Counted from the stretch's first letter, positions 1-16,789 are shown. The stretch is DNA of 64,000 nt from Macrostomum hystrix (GCA_950097015.1 CATNEN010000007.1:1426001-1490000); one strand, 5' to 3'. Numbers and translations are program-made. The notes: generated from the sequence alone by a model not told the origin.

Positions 1-1
1 G

Positions 2-655
2 CGGTTGTCCATTCGCCAGCTGATTCAAGCTGAGCTCTATGACGCCATCATGGGCTCAAACACCAGCAGCACCAGCTATGAGGTCCTGTCACTCGGCTGC
101 GGCCCAGGCAGCGACCTTCTTGCCGCCATGGACGTGTTCCAGCTGGTGGCCAAGTCAGAGGGTCTGGGACCACTTCAGATGGGCGTCACCGGTGTCGACA
201 TGTTTGATTGGCTGCTCTAGCCATTCCATGAGGCAGCCGCAGCGTTAGCTCTGCAGGGGCTAATCAGCAGCTTCCCGGAGCAGTTTCACCTGGGCCACAG
301 TCAGGGACAACTAAAACCCAAAGAAAAGTCTATAAGTCATGTCAGGTGCGCATCCGTTAACTTAATTTAATCTTGGTTTGTAGTTTGTATTTTATATACT
401 ATTGAAACGTTCGTTATAAATATGTTTGTTATAAATAAGTATATAAGGAATTGGCCAACGATGGAATGTCCCTGATTTTACTTCTCTGCTCTATTTATTT
501 ATTATTTATTAATTTTAGTTATTTTAAAAATACTTAAATATATTTTTCATAATTTTCAATTTTTTATTACTAACTAGCAGACTACGGAGACTACGTGGGA
601 CTACGGATGTTGCTACGACCTTATCCTGGTGAGCTATGCCGAGGTGCGGCTCTAA
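2..655 (+). pseudogene. Class I SAM-dependent methyltransferase fragment, 5' end outside window, with in-frame stops
   Basis: Frame from 2 reads ...YEVLSLGCGPGSDLL (motif I glycine loop) ...GVTGVDMFD; TAG at 218-220; after acceptor CAG (578-580) the sequence 581-655 reads TTETTWDYGCCYDLILVSYAEVRL* (motif IV-like YDLIL). Confidence 0.6.
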
Positions 656-872
656 GACAAGTTTCGTCACCGACTGGCTGCCGCAGCTGCTAAAAGTGCA
701 ATAATTTGTGTTGTCATTTTTGCTATTAACGCTGTTGTTGATTATCTGCTGCTGGTGCTAGACGCAGATCTTAGGAAAATTGTTTGAAACCCTTATCAAT
801 TTTATGAGTAAGCAGCATCACCTTATCAATTCTGTTAGTAAGCAGCCTCGCTTATCCTCTGTTTATTTGTTT

Positions 873-1030
873 ATTAGGCTCTAACCTGTTTATTAAGCTC
901 TAACCTGTTTATTAAGCTCTAACCTGTTTATTAAGCTCTAACCTGTTTATTAAGCTCTAACCTGTTTATTAAGCTCTAACCTGTTTATTAAGCTCTAACC
1001 TGTTTATTAAGCTCTAACCTGTTTATTAAG
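873..1030. repeat. 19-bp tandem repeat TAACCTGTTTATTAAGCTC, ~8 copies
   Basis: Directly visible periodicity. Confidence 0.95.
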
Positions 1031-1532
1031 TTCATTGAGTCGTTTATTCCTTCGTGTGAATCATCCCTTGTGTGGTTTGAGTCTGCGTTATTAGTAAACC
1101 AGCTATTACTTGCATGAGCGAAAACCCAGAGTCACTTGAGTTCAAATCTGAGGCGAGCAAAAGACATTACGCTCACCAATTTTAATCCTTTTGGCCTTTC
1201 TATTATCAGCGTTCTTTATTTTATTCGGCATTCTGCCTGAGCTCAGTGGGCAAGCTTCTACCCTCAACTTCATCTATCCCGTAACTTTCATCCGCTATGA
1301 GCTTCTAACGGAAACAAGTGTAAAACATACCGACCCCGGTGATAGCCAAATAGGGCCTTAGCTTTAAAATCTCTTAATTTTTGTTATGCGTTTTAGAAAA
1401 TTAGCACTTTTATTCATCAAAAGCTAAAAGTTAGTTTTTTGAAGTGCGAATATCGTTATTTTTTTAAGTTTCGGATGCTGAATTTTTGACGGCACATCAG
1501 GGGCTATCCAATAACGGCATGCGCGATTCCGG

Positions 1533-3828
1533 ATATATACTGCTTATAGTTGACTATCTGAACTGTTGAAGTGGGGGTACATTTACGGATTCATCAGTGG
1601 TTACACTGAGTTGAATATGTACTGCTTATAGTTGACTATCTGAACTGTTGAAGTGGGGGTACATTTACGGATTCATCAGTGGTTACACTGAGTTGAATAT
1701 GTACTGCTTATAGTTGACTATCTGAACTGTTGAAGTGGGGGTACATTTACAGATTCATCAGTGGTTACACTGAGTTGAATATATACTGCTTATAGTTGAC
1801 TATCTGAACTGTTGAAGTGGGGGTACATTTACAGATTCATCAGTGGTTACACTGAGTTGAATATGTACTGCTTATAGTCGACTATCTGAACTGTTGAAGT
1901 GGGGGAACATTTACGGATTCATCAGTGGTTACACTGAGTTGAATATATAGTGCTTATAGTTGACTATCTGAACTGTTGAAGTGGGGGTACATTTACGGAT
2001 TTATCAGTGGTTACACTGAGTTGAATATGTACTGCTTATAGTTGACTATCTGAACTGTTGAAGTGGGGGTACATTTACAGATTCATCAGTGGTTACACTG
2101 AGTTGAATATATACTGCTTATAGTTGACTATCTGAACTGTTGAAGTGGGGGTACATTTACGGATTCATCAGTGGTTACACTGAGTTGAATATATAGTGCT
2201 TATAGTTGACTATCTGAACTGTTGAAGTGGGGGTTTTACGGATTCATCAGTGGTTACACTGAGTTGAATATATAGTGCTTATAGTTGACTATCTGAACTG
2301 TTGAAGTGGGGGTACATTTACGGATTTATCAGTGGTTACACTGAGTTGAATATATACTGCTTATAGTTGACTATCTGAACTGTTGAAGTGGGGGTACATT
2401 TACGGATTCATCAGTGGTTACACTGAGTTGAATATGTACTGTTTATAGTTGACTATCTGAACTGTTGAAGTGAGGGTACATTTACGGATTCATCAGTGGT
2501 TACACTGAGTTGAATATATACTGCTTATAGTTGACTATCTTAACTGTTGAAGTGGGGGTACATTTACGGATTCATCAGTGGTTACACTGAGTTGAATATG
2601 TACTGTTTATAGTTGACTATCTGAACTGTTGAAGTGAGGGTACATTTACGGATTCATCAGTGGTTACACTGAGTTGAATATATACTGCTTATAGTTGACT
2701 ATCTTAACTGTTGAAGTGGGGGTACATTTACGGATTCATCAGTGGTTACACTGAGTTGAATATATACTGCTTATAGTTGACTATCTGAACTGTTGAAGTG
2801 GGGGTACATTTACGGATTCATCAGTGGTTACACTGAGTTGAATATGTACTGCTTATAGTTGACTATCTGAACTGTTGAAGTGGGGGTACATTTACGGATT
2901 CATCAGTGGTTACACTGAGTTGAATATATACTGCTTATAGTTGACTATCTGAACTGTTGAAGTGGGGGTACATTTACGGATTCATCAGTGGTTACACTGA
3001 GTTGAATATGTACTGCTTATAGTTGACTATCTGAACTGTTGAAGTGGGGGTACATTTACGGATTCATCAGTGGTTACACTGAGTTGAATATGTACTGCTT
3101 ATAGTTGACTATCTGAACTGTTGAAGTGGGGGTACATTTACAGATTCATCAGTGGTTACACTGAGTTGAATATATACTGCTTATAGTTGACTATCTGAAC
3201 TGTTGAAGTGGGGGTACATTTACAGATTCATCAGTGGTTACACTGAGTTGAATATGTACTGCTTATAGTCGACTATCTGAACTGTTGAAGTGGGGGTACA
3301 TTTACAGATTCATCAGTGGTTACACTGAGTTGAATATATAGTGCTTATAGTTGACTATCTGAACTGTTGAAGTGGGGGTACATTTACGGATTCATCAGTG
3401 GTTACACTGAGTTGAATATGTACTGCTTATAGTTGACTATCTGAACTGTTGAAGTGGGGGTACATTTACGGATTCATCAGTGGTTACACTGAGTTGAATA
3501 TATACTGCTTATAGTTGACTATCTGAACTGTTGAAGTGGGGGTACATTTACAGATTTATCAGTGGTTACACTGAGTTGAATATATAGTGCTTATAGTTGA
3601 CTATCTGAACTGTTGAAGTGGGGGTACATTTACGGATTCATCAGTGGTTACACTGAGTTGAATATATACTGCTTATAGTTGACTATCTGAACTGTTGAAG
3701 TGGGGGTACATTTACGGATTTATCAGTGGTTACACTGAGTTGAATATATAGTGCTTATAGTTGACTATCTGAACTGTTGAAGTGGGGGTACATTTACGGA
3801 TTCATCAGTGGTTACACTGAGTTGAAAT
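1533..3828. repeat. 82-bp tandem repeat, ~28 copies
   Basis: TTGAATATGT recurs at 1611 and 1693; units differ by only a few substitutions. Confidence 0.97.
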
Positions 3829-4374
3829 CATACTGCTCAAATTCGACTATCATGACAATTAATTTACACTTGCACTTCAGGAAACAGAGTTCTGACAATG
3901 GGGCTTTTGGCGTTAAATTCGTATCAGATTGAGATGAGAAATCTAATTCTATACTGACATCCAATTAATCTAATTTTTGCTGAGATTGAGGTACATGTAG
4001 AGCTACTTGTTACCATTGCACTCGATACGTACAGTACATTACCAGCAATCGACCTCAATGCCGTTACTGTTAAAATCTTAAACACGAAACTCTTTCTTGT
4101 TTTTGCAAAAGTACAGTCGGCTGAACTTGGGTACTTGAGGCATCGGTTTGCTTGCTGTACATATCGAAAATTGATTAATTTAGTCAATTAAGTAACAAAT
4201 TGTACACAATATTATTTTAATGCTGGAATGGCGATATGTTAAGCATATAATTTTCAAAGAATAACACGTCGTTATATACTATCAACCACTTTCATAGTAG
4301 GCTTCTGACAGTAGGTGTAACAAAATATGCGCCATTTAAGACAGGCTTTATACGGGATGGTATCGGGCGCATTT

Positions 4375-6637
4375 CGTAAGCTACTTATTTATTAGCAAGC
4401 AGCAAGACGAAGTACAATTTGTATATTTACTAGCTACTCGTAAATAAGAAAAATGTGCATATTGCAATAACTGCTCAACAGGGGGTAAGTACAGAGTACA
4501 CGGACTTGAGAATGCGCAAAATAATATCAAATTAAGGTGAGAAGCATGTATCTTTGCAGTTAGCAACCAGTACTCAGTATTCCAGCGCTGCATTGGTGGG
4601 ATGGCAGGCCCGCTAGTCGGCTAGATGGGTAGCTGCAGACAGTGCATAATATGCAATTATCTTCCGTCGTACATTGAGAAACCGCGCATCGCGAAGGTGG
4701 CCGACACTGACGGCCGGCTACGGTTTCTGCTCGTGACAGACAGGCTTCGCCACTGTTTTTGCAAGGCTGCCTCCGAATAAGCTAAACTGTCGAGTCCAGT
4801 TCGCATTTCCTGGCAGGGTGGGAATTGAACTTCAATATAAAATTCGATAAATAAGTCACAAATTTAAGTAATTAAAAGCATCTTTTACCTGTATTTAAGC
4901 CTAAAAGTGCCACTACATCTTTTGGTGCCGAGTGCGATTGTTCTCCAGTCCAGCAGTTGTGCACCACGGAACATAGGGAAAAAATGAATGAAAGCAGGAA
5001 ATTATATTGAGAACACGCAGATTGAGAGCTGAATCGCAAATGATACTAAATCTTAAACTAAAAGTAGCGTTCATTGCTTTGATTTCTTGATTGACGTACC
5101 GGAAACAAGACAAATTAGGTCAACTTTGTGAGAGGGAGTCTACTATAACAGCAAATTTCTGGGTATAAAGAATGTGAATAGATAGAATAAAATATATGAA
5201 GTGATTGGTTCGTGGATATTCAGTACAGAAGGTTGTAAAACACCTAGACTAACTAGTAGTGACGTCTTGGCCAGTGCAAAAGATTGAAACGCGCACTGTT
5301 CACTTTCACGCCACGATGAGGCGCGTCACGTTCGTGAAAGAAAAATTTATCTGACAAATGCAGAGGGAAAATGTCAAAGCAATGAATGCCCATTGACAAT
5401 CCCAGCATTAGTTTTATGCAGAGGGAAAATGTCAAAGCAATGAATGCACATTGACAATCCCAGCATTAGTTTTATGCAGAGGGAAAAATGTCAAAGCAAT
5501 GAATGCACATTGACAATCCCAGCATTAGTTTTATGCAGAGGGAAAAATGTCAAAGCAATGAATGCACATTGACAATCCCAGCATTAGTTTTATGCAGAGG
5601 GAAAATGTCAAAGCAATGAATGCACATTGACAATCCCAGCATTAGTTTTATGCAGAGGGAAAAATGTCAAAGCAATGAATGCACATTGACAATCCCAGCA
5701 TTAGTTTTATGCAGAGGGAAAATGTCAAAGCAATGAATGCCCATTGACAATCCCAGCATTAGTTTTATGCAGAGGGAAAATGTCAAAGCAATGAATGCCC
5801 ATTGACAATCCCAGCATTAGTTTTATGCAGAGGGAAAATGTCAAAGCAATGAATGCACATTGACAATCCCAGCATTAGTTTTATGCAGAGGGAAAATGTC
5901 AAAGCAATGAATGCACATTGACAATCCCAGCATTAGTTTTATGCAGAGGGAAAATGTCAAAGCAATGAATGCACATTGACAATCCCAGCATTAGTTTTAT
6001 GCAGAGGGAAAATGTCAAAGCAATGAATGCACATTGACAATCCCAGCATTAGTTTTATGCAGAGGGAAAATGTCAAAGCAATGAATGCACATTGACAATC
6101 CCAGCATTAGTTTTATGCAGAGGGAAAATGTCAAAGCAATGAATGCACATTGACAATCCCAGCATTAGTTTTATGCAGAGGGAAAATGTCAAAGCAATGA
6201 ATGCACATTGACAATCCCAGCATTAGTTTTATGCAGAGGGAAAATGTCAAAGCAATGAATGCACATTGACAATCCCAGCATTAGTTTTATGCAGAGGGAA
6301 AAATGTCAAAGCAATGAATGCACATTGACAATCCCAGCATTAGTTTTATGCAGAGGGAAAAATGTCAAAGCAATGAATGCACATTGACAATCCCAGCATT
6401 AGTTTTATGCAGAGGGAAAATGTCAAAGCAATGAATGCACATTGACAATCCCAGCATTAGTTTTATGCAGAGGGAAAATGTCAAAGCAATGAATGCACAT
6501 TGACAATCCCAGCATTAGTTTTATGCAGAGGGAAAATGTCAAAGCAATGAATGCACATTGACAATCCCAGCATTAGTTTTATGCAGAGGGAAAATGTCAA
6601 AGCAATGAATGCACATTGACAATCCCAGCATTAGTTT
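4375..6637. repeat. Long direct repeat copy 1: ~1 kb unique block A plus 58/59-bp array
   Basis: 4375-~5390 matches 9505-~10520 at offset 5130; the only substitution I found is T4463 vs C9593. Confidence 0.95.
5357..6637. repeat. 58/59-bp tandem repeat, ~22 copies
   Basis: Unit AAATGTCAAAGCAATGAATGCACATTGACAATCCCAGCATTAGTTTTATGCAGAGGGA; CCCAGCATTA at 5401 and 5459. Confidence 0.97.
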
Positions 6638-6682
6638 GAACTTTTTTTTAACTTTGACTGCTGTCTGCTGGTTTGGCATGAG

Positions 6683-7777
6683 TTATTCTTTTAGCCAGCC
6701 AAAAGTTTTTATGATTTCGACGCGTCTTTCTCCATAATCGTAAAGAATTTCCTGTCCTACGTTAATTGCATTTGTTACGCGAAAAAATACACAGGGTACA
6801 CCGTTCTTTTCTGAAACAAACGGTTTTGAATTGGCTTTTTTCCTAGAGTGATTAATATAACGGCCAATGCCGGAGCTACGCGTTGCGTCAATACAGAAAT
6901 GATTTTCTTTGTGTTTGAAATAAAGTATAAAGTTTCCTACACTTTGATCGTATTGACGCTCGCGCCATCTTCCTTCTGCAGCAGTTAAGAGTTCACCATC
7001 GTAATCGCAAATTATATCACCTACAGATAAGGCGGATCGTGCGAAAACGCCGCTTCCATTTGGATCAATACTGTTATACTGGATTTCGAGTGCTTCAGAA
7101 ACGATTAAATTGGGCACCATATCGCGCTTTCGCTTTAATCGGCACGGTATCGGGCGGATTCCAGTACCAATAGTTTCAGAAGAGTTTGTGTGACTTTTTT
7201 GCTTATTGAGAGGTTTTTCTGATGCAACGTGTGGTACGTAATAGATTCCTTTCGCTTCTTTATCTATTTTGAGTTTCCATCGCCTGCTGTCAACACTGAC
7301 GTCGGCAATCATAGGAGTTTGATCAAACTTACCGGCAGCAGCCTCAGCAGCACTGAGCTGGGTCATCAGGTTGCCACTGCCACTGCCTGCACCCGTGCCG
7401 ATGGCAGCCTCAGCATCACTGAGCTGGGACTTCTGGTTGTCGCTGATTTCCAAAATTTTTTTTAGTGTTTCAAGGCGCGTTGTAGCTCGTTCACGCGCAC
7501 ACTTGTTGTGACAACGCCCAGTAAACACCGCGCGACCGTTCCGAAATTCTTCATGATGTTTTGCTGCATAGTGAGCTCGGAGGTTCACAAATAACTTATT
7601 ACAAAAATTGCACAGAAGAAGTTCTTTCTTGTTTGATTTGGCACTTAGTGTTATCATAGTTTCAACACGATTTGGAAGAATATGCGGATGCGACTTGCTA
7701 CAGTGATCTCGAATCTTATCGGATCTGCAGATATAGTCACAAAAATGGCACTGAATTTTTCGGTTTCGATTGACCAT
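6683..7777 (-). CDS. C2H2 zinc finger x2 plus SET-domain lysine methyltransferase, SETD8/PR-Set7 (H4K20me1)-like, 364 aa, intronless CDS
   Basis: Within ORF 6683-7873; likely ATG 7777 just after a polypyrimidine-CAG acceptor (7790-7791). CHFC..DHCSKSH and CNFC..AHYAAKH fingers; GDIICDYDGELL, FCIDAT, GRYINHS and EILYDYGERRVEIIKTFGWLKE match the SETD8 C-terminus (LLYDYGDRSK...PWL). Confidence 0.9.
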   Translation of the reverse strand: MVNRNRKIQCHFCDYICRSDKIRDHCSKSHPHILPNRVETMITLSAKSNKKELLLCNFCNKLFVNLRAHYAAKHHEEFRNGRAVFTGRCHNKCARERATTRLETLKKILEISDNQKSQLSDAEAAIGTGAGSGSGNLMTQLSAAEAAAGKFDQTPMIADVSVDSRRWKLKIDKEAKGIYYVPHVASEKPLNKQKSHTNSSETIGTGIRPIPCRLKRKRDMVPNLIVSEALEIQYNSIDPNGSGVFARSALSVGDIICDYDGELLTAAEGRWRERQYDQSVGNFILYFKHKENHFCIDATRSSGIGRYINHSRKKANSKPFVSEKNGVPCVFFRVTNAINVGQEILYDYGERRVEIIKTFGWLKE

Positions 7778-8104
7778 AGCGAAATTTAGCTGAAAGGAAA
7801 AAACGAACGATAAGAAAGCTACTACGGTTTCAGAGTGAAAATGCTTCATCATAAAATTGTACATGTAGCACAACGAATGTCCTGCTACTCCGTAGAAGCT
7901 AAATTTTCAGCTGTTTTGGTTACATAAATCTGTTTGAGAAACGTATCTAAAAGAATAAGAAACGATACAAAATGTAACAAATATGGATGTTCAAATATAT
8001 TTGTTGACAAACATTTTATATGTAACTGACTTATTTAGCATTGCAGCTATATTAAATATTGAAAATAAAAGAATGACTACTTCAAAGCAAGAAGCAAAGC
8101 AGGA

Positions 8105-9504
8105 AGATTAAAGATACATGATACAATATACAATATAGAAGATACATGATGCAAGATTAAAGAAACTGATACCTAGATACAAGATACAAGATAGATGTAT
8201 CTTGATACCTGATACAAGATAGAAGATGAAAGATACAAGATACAATATAGAAGATACATGATACAAGATTAAAGAAACTGATACAAGATAGAATTGATAA
8301 AAGATACAAGATAGAAGATGAAAGATACAAGATACAATATAGAAGATACATGATACAAGATTAAAAAAACGGATACAAGATAGAAGATAAAAGATACAAG
8401 ATAGAAGATGAAAAATACAAGATACAATATAGAAGATACATGATGCAAGATAAAGAAACTGATACCTAGATACAAGATACAATATAGAAGATACATGATG
8501 CAAGATTAAAGAAACTGATACCTAGATACAAGATACAAGATAGATGTATCTTGATACCTGATACAAGATAGAAGATGAAAGATACAAGATACAATATAGA
8601 AGATACATAATACAAGATTAAAAAAAGTGATACAAGATAGAAGATAAAAGATACAAGATAGAAGATAAAAGATACAAGATACAATATAGAAGATACATGA
8701 TACAAGATTAAAGAAACTGATACAAGATAGAAGATGAAAGATACAAGATACAATATAGAAGATACATGATACAAGATTAAAGAAACTGATACAATATAGA
8801 AGATAAAAGATACAAGATAGAAGATAAAAGATACAAGATACAATATAGAAGATACATGATACAAGATTAAAGAAACTGATACAAGATAGAAGATAAAAGA
8901 TACAAGATAGAAGATAAAAGATACAAGATAGAAGATAAAAGATACAAGATACAATATAGAAGATACATGATACAAGATTAAAGAAACTGATACAATATAG
9001 AAGATACATGATACAAGATTAAAGAAACTGATACAATATAGAAGATAAAAGATACAAGATAGAAGATGAAAGATACAAGATACAATATAGAAGATACATG
9101 ATACAAGATTAAAGAAACTGATACAATATAGAAGATAAAAGATACAAGATAGAAGATGAAAGATACAAGATACAATATAGAAGATACATAATACAAGATT
9201 AAAAAAACTGATACAAGATAGAAGATAAAAGATACAAGATAGAAGATGAAAGATACAAGATACAATATAGAAGATACATGATACAAGATTAAAGAAACTG
9301 ATACAATATAGAAGATAAAAGATACAAGATAGAAGATGAAAGATACAAGATACAATATAGAAGATACATGATACAAGATTAAAGAAACTGATACACTATA
9401 GAAGATAAAAGATACAAGATAGAAGATGAAAGATACAAGATACAATATAGAAGATACATGATACAAGATTAAAGAAACTGATACAATATAGAAGATAAAA
9501 GATA
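8105..9504. repeat. GATAC/GATA-rich purine-biased satellite with 90-bp higher-order repeat
   Basis: AAGATACAT(G/A) at 9001, 9091, 9181, 9271, 9361, 9451; built from GATACAA/GATAGAA monomers. Confidence 0.95.
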
Positions 9505-11590
9505 CGTAAGCTACTTATTTATTAGCAAGCAGCAAGACGAAGTACAATTTGTATATTTACTAGCTACTCGTAAATAAGAAAAATGTGCATATCGCAATAA
9601 CTGCTCAACAGGGGGTAAGTACAGAGTACACGGACTTGAGAATGCGCAAAATAATATCAAATTAAGGTGAGAAGCATGTATCTTTGCAGTTAGCAACCAG
9701 TACTCAGTATTCCAGCGCTGCATTGGTGGGATGGCAGGCCCGCTAGTCGGCTAGATGGGTAGCTGCAGACAGTGCATAATATGCAATTATCTTCCGTCGT
9801 ACATTGAGAAACCGCGCATCGCGAAGGTGGCCGACACTGACGGCCGGCTACGGTTTCTGCTCGTGACAGACAGGCTTCGCCACTGTTTTTGCAAGGCTGC
9901 CTCCGAATAAGCTAAACTGTCGAGTCCAGTTCGCATTTCCTGGCAGGGTGGGAATTGAACTTCAATATAAAATTCGATAAATAAGTCACAAATTTAAGTA
10001 ATTAAAAGCATCTTTTACCTGTATTTAAGCCTAAAAGTGCCACTACATCTTTTGGTGCCGAGTGCGATTGTTCTCCAGTCCAGCAGTTGTGCACCACGGA
10101 ACATAGGGAAAAAATGAATGAAAGCAGGAAATTATATTGAGAACACGCAGATTGAGAGCTGAATCGCAAATGATACTAAATCTTAAACTAAAAGTAGCGT
10201 TCATTGCTTTGATTTCTTGATTGACGTACCGGAAACAAGACAAATTAGGTCAACTTTGTGAGAGGGAGTCTACTATAACAGCAAATTTCTGGGTATAAAG
10301 AATGTGAATAGATAGAATAAAATATATGAAGTGATTGGTTCGTGGATATTCAGTACAGAAGGTTGTAAAACACCTAGACTAACTAGTAGTGACGTCTTGG
10401 CCAGTGCAAAAGATTGAAACGCGCACTGTTCACTTTCACGCCACGATGAGGCGCGTCACGTTCGTGAAAGAAAAATTTATCTGACAAATGCAGAGGGAAA
10501 ATGTCAAAGCAATGAATGCCCATTGACAATCCCAGCATTAGTTTTATGCAGAGGGAAAATGTCAAAGCAATGAATGCACATTGACAATCCCAGCATTAGT
10601 TTTATGCAGAGGGAAAAATGTCAAAGCAATGAATGCACATTGACAATCCCAGCATTAGTTTTATGCAGAGGGAAAATGTCAAAGCAATGAATGCACATTG
10701 ACAATCCCAGCATTAGTTTTATGCAGAGGGAAAATGTCAAAGCAATGAATGCACATTGACAATCCCAGCATTAGTTTTATGCAGAGGGAAAATGTCAAAG
10801 CAATGAATGCCCATTGACAATCCCAGCATTAGTTTTATGCAGAGGGAAAATGTCAAAGCAATGAATGCACATTGACAATCCCAGCATTAGTTTTATGCAG
10901 AGGGAAAATGTCAAAGCAATGAATGCCCATTGACAATCCCAGCATTAGTTTTATGCAGAGGGAAAAATGTCAAAGCAATGAATGCACATTGACAATCCCA
11001 GCATTAGTTTTATGCAGAGGGAAAATGTCAAAGCAATGAATGCCCATTGACAATCCCAGCATTAGTTTTATGCAGAGGGAAAATGTCAAAGCAATGAATG
11101 CCCATTGACAATCCCAGCATTAGTTTTATGCAGAGGGAAAAATGTCAAAGCAATGAATGCACATTGACAATCCCAGCATTAGTTTTATGCAGAGGGAAAA
11201 TGTCAAAGCAATGAATGCACATTGACAATCCCAGCATTAGTTTTATGCAGAGGGAAAAATGTCAAAGCAATGAATGCACATTGACAATCCCAGCATTAGT
11301 TTTATGCAGAGGGAAAATGTCAAAGCAATGAATGCACATTGACAATCCCAGCATTAGTTTTATGCAGAGGGAAAATGTCAAAGCAATGAATGCACATTGA
11401 CAATCCCAGCATTAGTTTTTTGCAGAGGGAAAAATGTCAAAGCAATGAATGCACATTGACAATCCCAGCATTAGTTTTTTGCAGAGGGAAAAATGTCAAA
11501 GCAATGAATGCACATTGACAATCCCAGCATTAGTTTTTTGCAGAGGGAAAAATGTCAAAGCAATGAATGCACATTGACAGTCCCAGCATT
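9505..11590. repeat. Long direct repeat copy 2: block A plus 58/59-bp array
   Basis: Same CGTAAGCTACTTATTTATTAG start as 4375; same short ORFs recur in the track at offset 5130. Confidence 0.95.
10487..11590. repeat. 58/59-bp tandem repeat, ~19 copies
   Basis: Same unit as 5357-6637. Confidence 0.97.
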
Positions 11591-11690
11591 TTTTTGTGTC
11601 AGATAGCAGATACTTAATAGTAAAGTGTTGCATTTTGACTTAAATATTATGAGACTTTTTGGTTTGATGCACTTAGCTGCTAATATATAT

Positions 11691-12002
11691 TTAACACGCG
11701 GTCTCGTCATCATCAGAATCATCTGATGCTGAATTGAATGAGTTATCTAGATCGTCCAGTCGTTCGTTAGAATCATTTTTGTCTAAACTGTCAACCGTGG
11801 GAGTTAAACTTTGGATTGAGTCTTGGTTGACTGAGAGCATTGCTATAGGGACACTTTCAATTTGCCGGTAAATAATCTGAAACAGTCGGTGAAAGTGTGC
11901 CGGTAGACCTGGTTGACCTTCTAAAGTTATACAATGCTCTTGAATACGCTTCTGAATATCACGCCATTCATCAAAAAGAATATCACGCCAGCCATCTTGA
12001 AG
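11691..12002 (-). CDS. Orphan terminal-exon-like open frame (103 aa) with acidic tail, product unknown
   Basis: Stop-free frame LQDGWRDILFDEWRDIQKRIQEHC...DDLDNSFNSASDDSDDDETAC*, preceded by CAGCAGTAG acceptor-like sequence. Confidence 0.45.
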   Translation of the reverse strand, partial: LQDGWRDILFDEWRDIQKRIQEHCITLEGQPGLPAHFHRLFQIIYRQIESVPIAMLSVNQDSIQSLTPTVDSLDKNDSNERLDDLDNSFNSASDDSDDDETAC

Positions 12003-12081
12003 CTACTGCTGATGTAGCCGATGACCCAAATATGAATTATGTTACTGAGACCTTAAATAATTATAAAGTGTTATATTATAA

Positions 12082-12281
12082 AGCTGGTGGCCAAGTCAGA
12101 GGGTCTGGGACCACTTCAGATGGGCGTCACCGGTGTCGACATGTTTGATTTGCTGCTCCAACCATTCCATGAGGCAGCCGCAGCGTTAGCTCTGCAGGGG
12201 CTAATCAGCAGCTTCCCGGAGCAGTTTCACCTGGGCCACAGCCAGGGACAACTAAAACCCAAAGAAAAGTCTATAAGTCAT
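12082..12281 (+). pseudogene. Second, 5'-truncated copy of the methyltransferase exon
   Basis: 200-bp match to 141-340 with about 4 substitutions; has CAA where copy 1 has TAG. Confidence 0.85.
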
Positions 12282-12666
12282 CACTTGCAGGAGCAACTAG
12301 ATTAGATACGATCTGGCGCTAATTTACTAACAATTCACTGCCTTCTTTGTTTGTTCTAAGCTTCAAGCTATAAAATATTGCTCAAATTGTGCTCATTCTG
12401 GCCTTGTAAATGACCAAACGATTTTCTTGGTAAAGTTTACCTAAAATTTATTCTGTCTAGAGTACTTTATAATAAGGAATATTTTGATATAGATCTAGAA
12501 TTAATAGATTTGTGTCTATAATATTTAGGGTTGAATATAAATGTTCAGTTGGTAACTGCATACTGATGCAGTTAACTGTACTTGATAAATATGCAAGATA
12601 AAACCCAGTGTGTTAAAAATTCAGTGTTCACTAACCCGAGTTTATAATTTTATATTCTTATTTTAT

Positions 12667-12820
12667 ATCACCTTATCAATTCTATGAGTAAGCAGCATCA
12701 CCTCATCAATTCTATGAGTAAGCAGCATCACCTCATCAATTCCATTAGTCAGCAGCATCACCTCATCAATTCCATTAGTCAGCAGCATCACCTCATCAAT
12801 TCTATGAGTAAGCAGCATCA
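12667..12820. repeat. 30-bp tandem repeat CACCTCATCAATTCTATGAGTAAGCAGCAT, ~5 copies; ~2 related copies at 790-850
   Basis: Direct inspection. Confidence 0.9.
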
Positions 12821-13119
12821 TTTCTGATTTGTGCATTCAAACTGTGACTGGTCACAGGCAGGTGAAAACAGTCAAGCAGTACCTGCAATTTGGAAGTCAA
12901 TGCACATCTAAGATGTAGGCCACGTGCAGCGCACTGCATACATTGCTACATAGAGCTAACTCATCCATAGGCAACATAAATCAAGTGGAGACATCTATGT
13001 CAGCAGAGTGTGCTGTGGCTAACAGTAGCAACCATGCGAAGCCACAATAGGTCACCTTGACACTCAACTTTCATGGAAATGTTGACTTTGCCTCTAGACT
13101 TACAGACTATCAAATATGA
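12820..13119 (+). mobile_element. Decayed tyrosine recombinase C-terminus (Crypton-like remnant)
   Basis: Reads ISDLCIQTVTGHRQVKTVKQY: TGH with Tyr at H+9, the conserved spacing of YR catalytic His/Tyr; TAG stops at 12916 and 13048; ends VTLTLNFHGNV...*. Confidence 0.6.
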
Positions 13120-13618
13120 AATTAAAACATTAAAACATTGATTAAATTTGTCCCAAAAAGTTAATTTTTATTCACTTCTCTACTATTTTTCTTCATTTAA
13201 AATATACCTGAAGATGTACACCATTGTGCAAAAAAGTTGTTTAATTAAATGTTAATTTTTGTTTCTCTATTTATACTGTTAATATACAATAGATTTAAAA
13301 AAAGTTGAATATGTTTTTTGCTGCATGCATAAATGCATTGGCAACATTGCCATGCCAGTGTAATTATGTAGTGTGCATTATGCAGGCCACTGACCAATTT
13401 GTATACCACTGCATGCCACTTCTGAAAATGCACACAGGAAAATTCTTGTCTGCACTACATGATCCACACTATGGATAGATATGGCATAGGCGTTATCTGC
13501 ATGCTTGAGTGTTGTACAAGAAAAGTTTGTTTGAGACACTACAACCAACTGTAGTCATCAAAACTATTGTGTCTTGAATGTTTTTGTACATATGATTGTT
13601 GGATTATGTTTATTCTAG

Positions 13619-14023
13619 TCTGGTGAGCTGGAAAGTCTAGGCAATCCTAGATTTATTGCATTGTGCTCCAACACTAAAACTTTTGTTGCTGATTCTTCAG
13701 GCCAGCTAGTGAGAGAGAATTGTGCAGGTGATATCACTGTGAGGCTCCCTTTTTGTTCCGTTTTACATGAAGACTAAAGTTATGAGATTCTTGCCTTTTC
13801 AATTGATGGGTCTGTCTGTCTAAAAGCCCAGAGGGATTTTGATTTGCCAAAGGAAATCACAGGTCTTAGCTGTGACAGCAAGTGCCAGGCTCTCTACATT
13901 GCTCAGTGGAATTCATTTTCTGTGGCAGGTTTAATTGGCTGCAGTTTAAGGGTGATCGATGCAGGCAGCCAGCCCGGCTGTGTTGTCTCCGCACCTCTGG
14001 TCGAGGTGTTTGGGTTGATGTAA
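13619..14023 (+). pseudogene. NHL-repeat / beta-propeller fragment with internal stop
   Basis: After TTCTAG acceptor reads SGELESLGNPRFIALCSNTKTFVADS...*SYEILAFSIDG...ITGLSCDSKCQALYIA; TAA at 13775. Confidence 0.5.
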
Positions 14024-15276
14024 TCAATATCGGGCTATTATTTTAAAGTCTGTTTTTAGGACTGATTGCAAAACAAAACACCAGCAGATAAGCATAAATT
14101 TTGAGCATGGATTCATATGGATAAAATTGAAATTATAAGCATAGGACCACGTGGATAAAATTGAAATTATCAGCATAGGACCATGTGAATAAGCACTTCC
14201 TATGGGACACAGCTAGGCCCTGGAAGCATGGTTAATAAAAAATTATTAATTATATTAGTTGTCTATACAACTACGGGCAACATATTTAAGGAAAACATGA
14301 GTGAATAGAAAGCACTGACGGTCATACTTACCTTAACGAATAGCTAGGGGCCTAATTTGACGATTTAATCTAAATTAATTAGAAACTTTATATTTACTAT
14401 TTTGCAATAAAAATGCGCTGCGACAAAAAAATCGCAATGCTTTTGACTGAGACTTCAAAATAAATTAAAGATTTAAGAATAGATCTATTATCTAGTAGTA
14501 GTATCAGTAGATAATTGGCACAAGTAACCTAATCGGTTTAGGATAGCATAGAATAGGATAGAATATTGGATAGGAATAAAACAACCGCAAAAACTGTAAT
14601 TTAAAATTTAAATTTCAAGTCAATAAAGCGCCTGTCTGTAACTAAAAACTGTTAAAGCAATTTTAATTTTTGTGCAATAAAATGAGATTTTTCACTAATT
14701 CTACGTTTTGTTTTTAGCGTTTGTTTTGTTTTAACGTGTTTACGTAACATTTTATCGTCCGGGAGTTTAGTTTGCGTGAAGGAATTGGGACGTACCAAAA
14801 TAAACACATATGAACACAAAATGAAGCAACGTTTAATAAAAACAGAATGTATATGAATCAATTTCGAATTTAGATTGCAGAAAACAAAAAATATCGAATA
14901 ATTCACAATTGGTTATGATCGGTTGTGTATCCTTTCAATGGTCCCTAGCAATCGAAATTCATTACTAATTCATTTGTTGGCCGGAACTCGGGAGGGAGAT
15001 AAGATGCCAAACTATTACCTTATTAATGTACGAAACACAGTCCCTCTTCCTCTATTTTGAATCTCAATCTTGTGCATCGGAAAGCGCCAAATTTTTTAAT
15101 TATGCATACTTACATACCTAGCTTCTACTTATTCATTCCTATATTTATAATCGTATACTTATTTTCTCTTGTATCTTCTAAATTACAGATTTTAGGTTCA
15201 ACTGTTACGGTATAGAATAAATAAGAATGAAAGAACGATTAAGAACGATAAAGAACTTTTAAGTTGGGCTTTCTAC

Positions 15277-16211
15277 CAGCCAGTATAATAATATTTTTTC
15301 CCTTCACTTCTATCAAGTCCGTGTAGATTGTTGAGTAGCGCTGAATCCTCGATGCGGAAGGTCCCTAGCTCGATAACCAATTACATTTTTTTTGTAATTG
15401 ACGAAATAAAACTTATCACTTTTTGTCATTTATTCTTTTCATTCCTCCTTTCTATTGATCTGTCATCTATTTCATTTCTAAAATGCATATAATATGCCTG
15501 TGTTGTATTATAGTTCTTGCCGTTCTAGCCAAAAAGATATAATTCATTATGCAAGAGTTTTCCATATACGAAATTCGTTCGCCACTGCTTCGAGTTCTTT
15601 CGAGTTCTAGGGACAAGTTTGGTTTCTTTTGAAAAATGGCTTTGTCATGTATGTATCTTATGTATCTCATTGAGCTACTTAGTCGAAGTTATTCTACACT
15701 ACGCCGTAAAAATGGCTTCCCTATATGTTTGGAAATGTCTAGAAATGGCTAGTGTTATGGCCAGCCAGTATAATAATATTTTTTCCCTTCACTTCTCTCA
15801 TGTCCCTGTAGATTGTTGAGTAGCGCTGAAACCTCGCATGCGGAAGGTCCCTAGCTCGATTACCAACCACAACTGATTTTTGTAATTGACGAAATAAAAC
15901 TTTTTCACTTTTTGTCATTTTTTCTTTTCATTCCTCCTTTCTATTAATCTGTCATCTATTTCATTTCTAAAATGCATATATGCCTGTGTTGTATATAGTT
16001 CTTGCCGTTCCAGCCAAAAAGATATAATTCATTATGCAAGAGTTTTCCATATCGAGTTCTTTGAGTTCTAGGGACAAGGATTCTAGTTTGGTTTCTTTTG
16101 AAAAATGGCCTTGTCATGTATGTATCTCATGTATCTCATTGAGCTACTTAGTCGAAGTTATTCTACACTTCGTAAAAATGCCGTAAAAATGGCTTCCCTA
16201 TATGTTTGGAA
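15277..16211. repeat. Two diverged tandem copies of a ~484-bp AT-rich unit
   Basis: CCAGCCAGTATAATAATATTTTTTCCC at ~15277 and ~15761, collinear with small indels. Confidence 0.9.
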
Positions 16212-16789
16212 ATAAGTTATTTATATAGTTTCTTACTACATGCACGTGGGTTAGGAATGCAATTCCCCCAAGGCCACCGCCAGTAAGGCTAGCCCCCCGT
16301 GGGTCCACGTGGAATCACCCGGCTAGCCGAGTATTTTTTGACTAGTGGAAGTGTCGGCTAGCCGGCGGCCGTTAGATGGTTAGATGGAGGCGCGCATAAT
16401 AACTACCAAACAAATGTACATCTACTGCGCTTGCACGAGGGGTTGATGTGGCAAAGGACAGAGCCGTAGACTCGTAGAGTGTACGTATGTACATTCAAGT
16501 TGTAGGCATTAGTACACCTCTGCCCGTGCACCGACCACACGACAGAGGGACAACAGCTGCCACATGGAGCAATGCATGCACGGACAAGCATAGCTAGCTC
16601 GTACATTTATTCTTAATCTCAACAGCGAAGTGCGTGAAATTAAACTAAGCAACAAACAGCAGAAACACGAAGCGAAAATTCTCACATCCCTACAGCGAAA
16701 CGGAATCTAATACCAGATTGTGGAAAACTTAGAGTAAGTCATTCGAACCGAATGCGAAACTGTCGATTCAGATTTTTGGAGAATTTGGC

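Follow-up and report, generated by a model that had tools for sequence, protein, structure and literature searches.

The window examined here is a 64,000-nucleotide stretch of the genome of the flatworm Macrostomum hystrix (GCA_950097015.1, CATNEN010000007.1:1426001-1490000; contig C7 below), in which positions are counted from the first letter. Positions 4375-11590 hold an intact minus-strand gene for a zinc-finger protein with a SET8-like histone methyltransferase domain, placed between two near-identical direct repeats, each of which consists of a segment termed block A and a 58-bp minisatellite. The original prediction had taken these 7.2 kb for a mobile cassette that carries a chromatin-writer gene. 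We found that they lie within a 32-kb copy of a transposon of the KDZ (Kyakuja-Dileera-Zisupton) type, and we consider it likely that their layout is a copy-specific internal rearrangement of this giant cut-and-paste element. Copies of the same family at other loci, such as the one on contig C39, are called canonical. The features of the locus, in window coordinates, are the following.

1-16378, plus strand: right-hand 16.4 kb of the KDZ copy, which starts at C7:1410331 (window -15669), as defined by a tile map against the canonical C39 copy, by its ends and by its target duplication.
1533-3851, plus strand: 82-bp tandem array of about 28 units, a native KDZ part according to the repeat scan and the tile map.
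3954-4374, plus strand: native 420-bp spacer from the 82-bp array to block A, as in canonical copies.
4375-5357, plus strand: block A copy 1 (A1), in minus-strand reading the distal portion of the presumed 3′ untranslated region (UTR) and terminator of the SET gene.
4388-4393, minus strand: AATAAA, the first poly(A) signal past the SET stop; the homologous signal is the first after the canonical transposase stop.
5358-6637, plus strand: 58-bp minisatellite array 1, 22 units, cut at junction J1.
6638-6685, minus strand: 48 bp of unique 3′-flanking sequence of the SET gene, including a run of eight A.
6686-7777, minus strand: intronless coding sequence for 364 amino acids, comprising two C2H2-like fingers, a low-complexity linker and a SET domain like that of SET8/KMT5A.
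7778-8103, minus strand: unique AT-rich 5′ flank (GC 31%) with a polypyrimidine-AG acceptor-like site directly before the ATG.
8104-9504, plus strand: AAGATAC satellite with a higher-order unit of about 90 bp.
9505-10487, plus strand: block A copy 2 (A2), with junction J2 at A position 1.
10488-11590, plus strand: 58-bp minisatellite array 2, 18.9 units, with its native end as in canonical copies.
11591-11980, plus strand: native KDZ sequence, which in canonical copies leads to the 3′ end of the transposase gene.
11981-12843, plus strand: 863-bp filler in place of the canonical 4.56 kb with the KDZ transposase.
16321-16378, plus strand: terminal inverted repeat at the right end of the 32-kb copy; the 8-bp target duplication comes next, at 16379-16386.

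Block A measures 983 bp and starts with CGTAAG. Its two copies stand in direct orientation at an offset of 5130 bp and differ by a single mismatch at 4463, a repetition that exceeds chance by far. The 58-bp arrays that follow comprise 22.0 and 18.9 units, and the order of their unit variants diverges beyond the third unit. Near-identical direct repeats with about one difference per kilobase and arrays of 22 versus 19 units had been announced by the original prediction and were borne out, as was the statement that on the minus strand an AATAAA (4388-4393 and 9518-9523) lies 13 nt ahead of the end of either repeat. Of the sequence motifs ascribed to block A, TATAAAG (5164) and TGACGTC (5260) are present as described, while CCAAT occurs only in the form of its plus-strand complement ATTGG. 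The stretch that separates the two repeats, formed by the SET ORF with its flanks and the AAGATAC satellite, amounts to 2.87 kb and was found nowhere else in the assembly. At J1 (6637/6638), array 1 is cut inside a 58-bp unit and joined to the SET 3′ flank, and at J2 (9504/9505) the satellite meets block A copy 2 exactly at A position 1. An Rfam scan of window positions 3000-13000 gave zero matches, and the profile of observed over expected CpG was uninformative.

The SET ORF has its likely ATG at 7777 and its stop at 6686-6688, yielding a protein of 364 amino acids. Pfam identified a SET domain (PF00856, E = 3e-15, 57 bits versus a cut-off of 22.4, residues 273-381), and the best relatives of solved structure, as judged by sequence, were human SETD8/KMT5A chains (1e-22), with Cryptosporidium SET8 (4e-13) and EZH2 (1e-8) as further matches; the human SETD8/KMT5A match stood well above those to EZH2, MLL and G9a. 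The predicted intact zinc-finger SETD8-like frame is thus real. In the alignment with the human enzyme, GSGV of the window protein pairs with GRGV, DYDG with EYHG, INHS with INHS and ILYDYG with LLYDYG. Both tyrosines of the LYDYG motif, including that of the Phe/Tyr switch, are present, in agreement with the earlier remark that the switch tyrosine of the YDY motif is retained. Residues G241, Y259, N309, H310 and Y348 were invariant across an alignment of 45 sequences. An AlphaFold model based on 45 sequences reached a predicted local distance difference test score (pLDDT) > 90 for residues 231-363 and matched human SET8 (hSET8, PDB 1zkk) with a template-modelling (TM) score of 0.79, a root-mean-square deviation of 1.9 Å and 36% identity; the top Foldseek matches were all hSET8 (TM 0.79-0.82). 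Two C2H2-like Cys2-His2 patterns were recognized within the N-terminal 110 residues (about 10-33 and 56-75), ahead of the SET domain (about 231-363). The first finger was modelled as a β-hairpin plus helix with moderate confidence and the remaining N-terminal half with low confidence; the fingers were not detected by Pfam.

Human SETD8/KMT5A (PR-Set7) is an H4K20 monomethyltransferase. The window protein, for which it represents the best match in sequence and fold (PDB 1zkk, 3f9w), keeps the GxG motif, the equivalent of Y245, NHS, the LYDYG motif with the equivalents of Y334 and Y336, and the C-terminal WLK helix, but differs in its N-terminal half, which consists of a pair of C2H2-like fingers plus a low-complexity linker. 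The complete set of catalytic motifs predicts an active lysine methyltransferase of the SET8 type, here attached to two C2H2-like fingers. The protein should bind S-adenosylmethionine and methylate lysine as SET8 does, and the fingers may confer DNA targeting. The G + C content at third codon positions (GC3) of the SET gene (0.374) equals that of the KDZ transposase gene (0.37), which explains why its coding sequence had been described as AT-rich and unlike the host exons.

Block A proved to be a recurrent part of a transposon family. At least 15 copies with 99-100% identity were detected in the 220-Mb genome, and 12 full-length copies at other loci are distributed over 10 contigs (99.2-99.4% identity). 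Comparison with the C39 copy revealed that block A and its array sit inside a repeat of 25-28 kb. All 12 other full copies exhibit a KDZ transposase match 1.4-1.9 kb past the array, reading towards the array, and canonical ORFs just right of the array matched the Pfam KDZ family (PF18758; 2.6e-16 and 4e-6), CxC1 and B-box. An HNH_3 match on a canonical ORF was discarded as a low-complexity artefact of a 30-bp repeat, as no domain stretch passed. The canonical order on the minus strand is transposase, 58-bp minisatellite, block A; in all 12 other full copies the latter lies between the transposase stop and the first AATAAA, and it ends 13 nt after that signal. Since the first AATAAA past the transposase stop is thus found at the end of block A, array and block A most likely represent the 3′ UTR and terminator of the transposase gene, a role deduced from their position. 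Members of the family are bounded by imperfect terminal inverted repeats of about 55 bp with a perfect 43-bp core and by 8-bp target duplications. The duplication at the C39 copy reads GATAGTGG, and the C39 and C7 copies are flanked differently.

Some further properties of the family were observed. The canonical C39 copy contains a fragment of a DDE_3 (Tc1/mariner-type) transposase (L020:7655-8224), suggesting a nested smaller transposon. The length of the 82-bp array varies greatly among KDZ copies and accounts for most of their size differences. Two relic KDZ copies (C7:3940001-3950000 and C1:14620001-14650000) are rearranged at the 58-bp array: in one of them, an array of about 65 units leads straight into the inverted left arm, and in the other the right KDZ terminus abuts the array after about eight units. 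The 58-bp arrays therefore look like hot spots of recombination or insertion.

The copy with the SET gene is 32,048 bp long (C7:1410331-1442378) and terminates on the right at window 16378. Both ends bear a perfect 43-bp repeat core, and the target duplication is CGTTAGAT/GGTTAGAT, with seven of eight bases matching. As derived from the sequence, the insertion site of the element is formed by the final 8 bases of a 24.6-kb sister copy. Only four terminal repeats were found in C7:1376001-1446000, and none of them represents an internal terminus of the 32-kb copy. These data bear on the idea that a host SET gene was caught between two independent or truncated KDZ copies. The SET segment is indeed single-copy, as a host gene would be. 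However, both termini share one target duplication, namely the last 8 bases of the 24.6-kb neighbour, so both arms stem from one insertion; further internal termini are missing, and the GC3 of the SET gene equals that of the transposase. The chance that a host gene was trapped in this way is practically negligible.

According to the tile map, the 32-kb copy is collinear with canonical copies except for the SET gene with the satellite and the second A and array, the transposase deletion, and a variable block on the left. The 4.56-kb region of the KDZ transposase is deleted, and the filler found instead (11981-12843) contains short pieces of the element's left part as well as a 30-bp tandem repeat (12667-12820). 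The 32-kb copy is a non-autonomous KDZ member. It had been noted correctly that gag, reverse transcriptase and transposase genes are absent from the 7.2 kb, where the SET ORF is the only one, and that the ends are not TG..CA; the transposase is absent because it was deleted in this non-autonomous copy.

A third block A (A3) was located outside the window, in the left arm of the element (C7:1415185-1416167). It is inverted and preceded by 46 bp of native upstream sequence, and canonical copies retain only the last 99 bp of this inverted A, which is full-length in the 32-kb copy. Next come a 37-bp filler, an inverted AAGATAC satellite (C7:1416245-1417357) and about 5 kb of variable sequence. This satellite variant was found nowhere else in the genome beyond the two arrays of the 32-kb element. 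The two satellite arrays align at about 86% only, while the A copies differ by 1-2 bases. A1, A2 and A3 share 5-6 diagnostic bases that set them apart from nine other copies.

The comparison within the family also bears on the assumption that the 7.2-kb unit is a non-autonomous LTR-like (long terminal repeat) or recombinase-mobilised cassette ended by the A-array repeats. What had suggested it are direct repeats of 2.2 kb with about 99.9% identity around a single gene, each of them terminating 13 nt past an AATAAA. The SET gene and its flanks occur only once in the genome, however, and the genome-wide copy survey revealed neither further copies of the unit nor any solo or independently placed block A. 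All A copies occupy the same internal KDZ position, the sequence outside the unit is native KDZ, and the whole is enclosed in a larger element with terminal repeats and a target duplication of its own. The unit itself lacks TG..CA ends and a target duplication: the CATTT that had been proposed as a flank also stands before block A of the canonical copy and is therefore native element sequence. Such a cassette is thus extremely improbable. As the SET segment is single-copy, the 7.2-kb unit never moved alone in this assembly. The part of the original prediction that stands is that a mobile element carries a chromatin-writer gene; the real mobile unit is not the 7.2 kb but the 32-kb KDZ copy, with which alone the SET gene would move as cargo.

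Repeats of 2.2 kb that are nearly identical and belong to a high-copy family are known to mislead assemblers, and a single A and array might have been written twice, for example if two haplotypes had been collapsed in tandem. The copies are distinguished, however, by one base, by the lengths of their arrays and by the order of the units, 2.87 kb of otherwise absent sequence lie between them, and the junctions are distinct, with the array interior joined to the SET flank in one case and the satellite to A position 1 in the other. An assembly artefact is thus very improbable. Since J2 lies 13 nt past an AATAAA and the coding sequence is intronless, an origin by retrocopying of an mRNA with its 3′ end at the block A poly(A) site was considered as well. 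It is unsupported: J1 and J2 exhibit no poly(A) tract, the only A8 run being 11 nt before J1, and the third A joins the satellite 46 bp further out than J2.

The window protein has about 50 weak relatives within the genome. Those sharing the finger module are encoded 1.6-2.5 kb downstream of an 827-amino-acid KDZ transposase ORF on the same strand, and 17 of 20 finger-module matches lie no more than 4 kb from a KDZ match. These zinc-finger-SET genes belong to a second multi-copy KDZ family (C1:3.46, C1:3.57, C7:10.98, C1:17.61 and C1:19.43 Mb, C25, C26 and elsewhere). Residues 1-109 of the window protein match finger ORFs of this family with 32% identity (E = 4e-8). Between the two families, the transposases are 39-52% and the SET proteins about 32-35% identical. 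The window SET gene lies on the transposase strand, downstream of the position that the transposase occupies in sister copies, here with the transposase deleted and with array, block A and satellite intervening. On contig C1 (about 14-19.7 Mb and 3.4-4.0 Mb), most SET8-like and finger-module matches and many KDZ transposase matches cluster; this cluster includes multi-copy ORFs of 190 amino acids that encode SET only (31% identity) and are loosely placed relative to the KDZ matches.

Among public proteins, Macrostomum lignano PAA74960.1 (E = 8.6e-35, full length) and PAA66912.1, both hypothetical, were the only full-length relatives, and the finger module also matched an M. lignano protein at E = 2.5e-10. 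The KDZ-linked genes and these two proteins share the two-finger and SET8-like architecture of the window protein as well as a homologous finger module (E = 4e-8 to 2.5e-10). Both groups are only 27-38% identical to the window protein, however, and the window gene is intronless, whereas the gene of the second family is split between fingers and SET. The window gene also resides in another KDZ family, whose other copies are without SET. A HMMER search of 1.84 billion cluster representatives yielded no relative above about 45% SET-domain identity, and a word-based search of 5.8 billion proteins yielded no close relative and two marginal matches only. The probable host orthologue of KMT5A/SET8 (C1:7767641-7768225, minus strand) corresponds to a 307-amino-acid open frame, and no finger module was detected nearby. 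Its product is 45% identical to a canonical KMT5A-like representative of 352 amino acids but only 34% identical to the window protein, and a recent copy of host KMT5A was therefore rejected as the source of the latter. The nearest genomic relative (C38:29245195-29245428, minus strand) is a SET pseudogene relic that covers the last 78 residues with 57% identity and contains an in-frame stop; no KDZ remains were detected within 5 kb of it.

With regard to the origin of the layout, we lean slightly towards the view that the 32-kb copy gained the SET segment through illegitimate recombination or error-prone repair. The near-identity of the A copies, the illegitimate nature of J1 and J2, the filler at the transposase deletion and the rearranged arrays of the two relics support such a gain. 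Conversely, the arrangement could be ancestral. The family would then have carried both a transposase and a zinc-finger-SET gene, each with an array-A terminator, and homologous recombination between the direct repeats would have removed SET and satellite from the other copies, leaving the 32-kb copy as the last to keep SET. The second KDZ family, with its transposase followed by a zinc-finger-SET gene on the same strand, offers a precedent; the window SET gene is on the strand of the transposase and downstream of its position in sister copies. Recombination between the 2.2-kb direct repeats would yield the exact canonical structure. The inverted A, full-length here versus 99 bp in canonical copies, suggests that the 32-kb copy may be less deleted on the left, too, and the identities between the families (about 50% for the transposases, about 35% for SET) are compatible with co-divergence. 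Yet A1, A2 and A3 differ mutually by 1-2 bases and from the others at 5-6 sites, so that old duplicates would need continual gene conversion. Moreover, the older relics (C1:14.63 Mb, 98.6%; C7:3.94 Mb, 94.5%) show no SET, and the nearest SET kin lack adjoining KDZ remains. An ancestral state is thus unlikely, although it retains an appreciable minor chance.

If the SET segment was gained in this copy, as we prefer to assume, error-prone repair or template switching, or illegitimate recombination in the rearrangement-prone arrays, would have created the layout, and the same kind of event would have removed the transposase and left the filler. Transcription of SET would begin in the unique AT-rich 5′ flank, in which the acceptor-like site directly precedes the ATG. 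The transcript would extend through array 1 and A1, probably ending at the A1 poly(A) signal (4388-4393), the sole AATAAA/ATTAAA within 2.4 kb downstream of the SET stop on the minus strand. The 32-kb element would be mobilised by transposase from sister copies.

Several observations weigh against this account. The transposase ORFs of the sister copies, from which the enzyme would be supplied, are split across three frames. A copy-in (template-switch) model predicts a donor of the SET segment, but none was found elsewhere in the assembly. The terminator role of array and block A, like the expression of SET, is deduced from position only. Within the 10 kb examined around each of the two nearest SET relatives (the C38 relic with 57% identity and a C1 paralogue with 38%), no KDZ remains were detected, so that the link of the SET lineage to KDZ rests on the shared finger module and on position. 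Finally, a quick maximum-likelihood tree of 75 SET domains, from which the host KMT5A candidate was left out, placed all four zinc-finger-SET rows in a weakly supported group of 15 rows (92 in the Shimodaira-Hasegawa-like approximate likelihood-ratio test, SH-aLRT) without resolving them into one clade.

Transposons that encode their own chromatin- or DNA-modifying enzymes offer a rare view of how mobile DNA and host silencing compete in an arms race. With the present locus, a very divergent zinc-finger-SET gene is documented in a second KDZ family, in which 13 copies are collinear in other respects and SET, found in one of them, represents a gain-or-loss polymorphism. As SET-bearing and SET-free copies can be compared, the benefit of the enzyme to the element is directly testable. 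One could further speculate that the 58-bp array and block A form a portable 3′-end or terminator cassette that was duplicated upon gene uptake, and that the fingers of an acquired or retained H4K20 methyltransferase recognise the element's own arrays and set the chromatin state of the element; we regard this scenario as improbable. In the titles and abstracts returned by full-text literature searches, we found no description of an animal KDZ element that carries a SET8-like enzyme.

Non-autonomous derivatives that arise from cut-and-paste elements by internal deletion or rearrangement are well known from Ac to Ds, from P elements and from gene capture of the Pack-MULE type. The 32-kb copy resembles these derivatives in its deleted transposase, its filler of element snippets, the illegitimate junctions around internal duplications and foreign DNA, and its intact termini. 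It differs from them in that the assembly contains no donor locus and that the captured gene is complete and intact instead of a fragment. SET-domain histone methyltransferases are encoded by HarbingerS and Phytophthora MuDR transposons (Kojima & Jurka 2014, cited in PMC12730594). These are likewise DNA transposons with an incorporated SET histone methyltransferase gene, but they belong to other transposase superfamilies and other hosts (oomycetes for the SET carriers). In fungi, KDZ DNA transposons carry TET/JBP dioxygenase genes (Iyer et al. 2014, cited in PMC12730594). The element described here shares with them the transposase superfamily (PF18758 and CxC1 in canonical copies) and the placement of an epigenetic-enzyme gene beside the transposase, and its 8-bp target duplications correspond to the 8 bp reported for Zisupton and Dileera. 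In contrast to the fungal elements, it resides in a flatworm, its own transposase is deleted, and its passenger, located between duplicated internal modules, is a zinc-finger SET8-like lysine methyltransferase and not a DNA dioxygenase.

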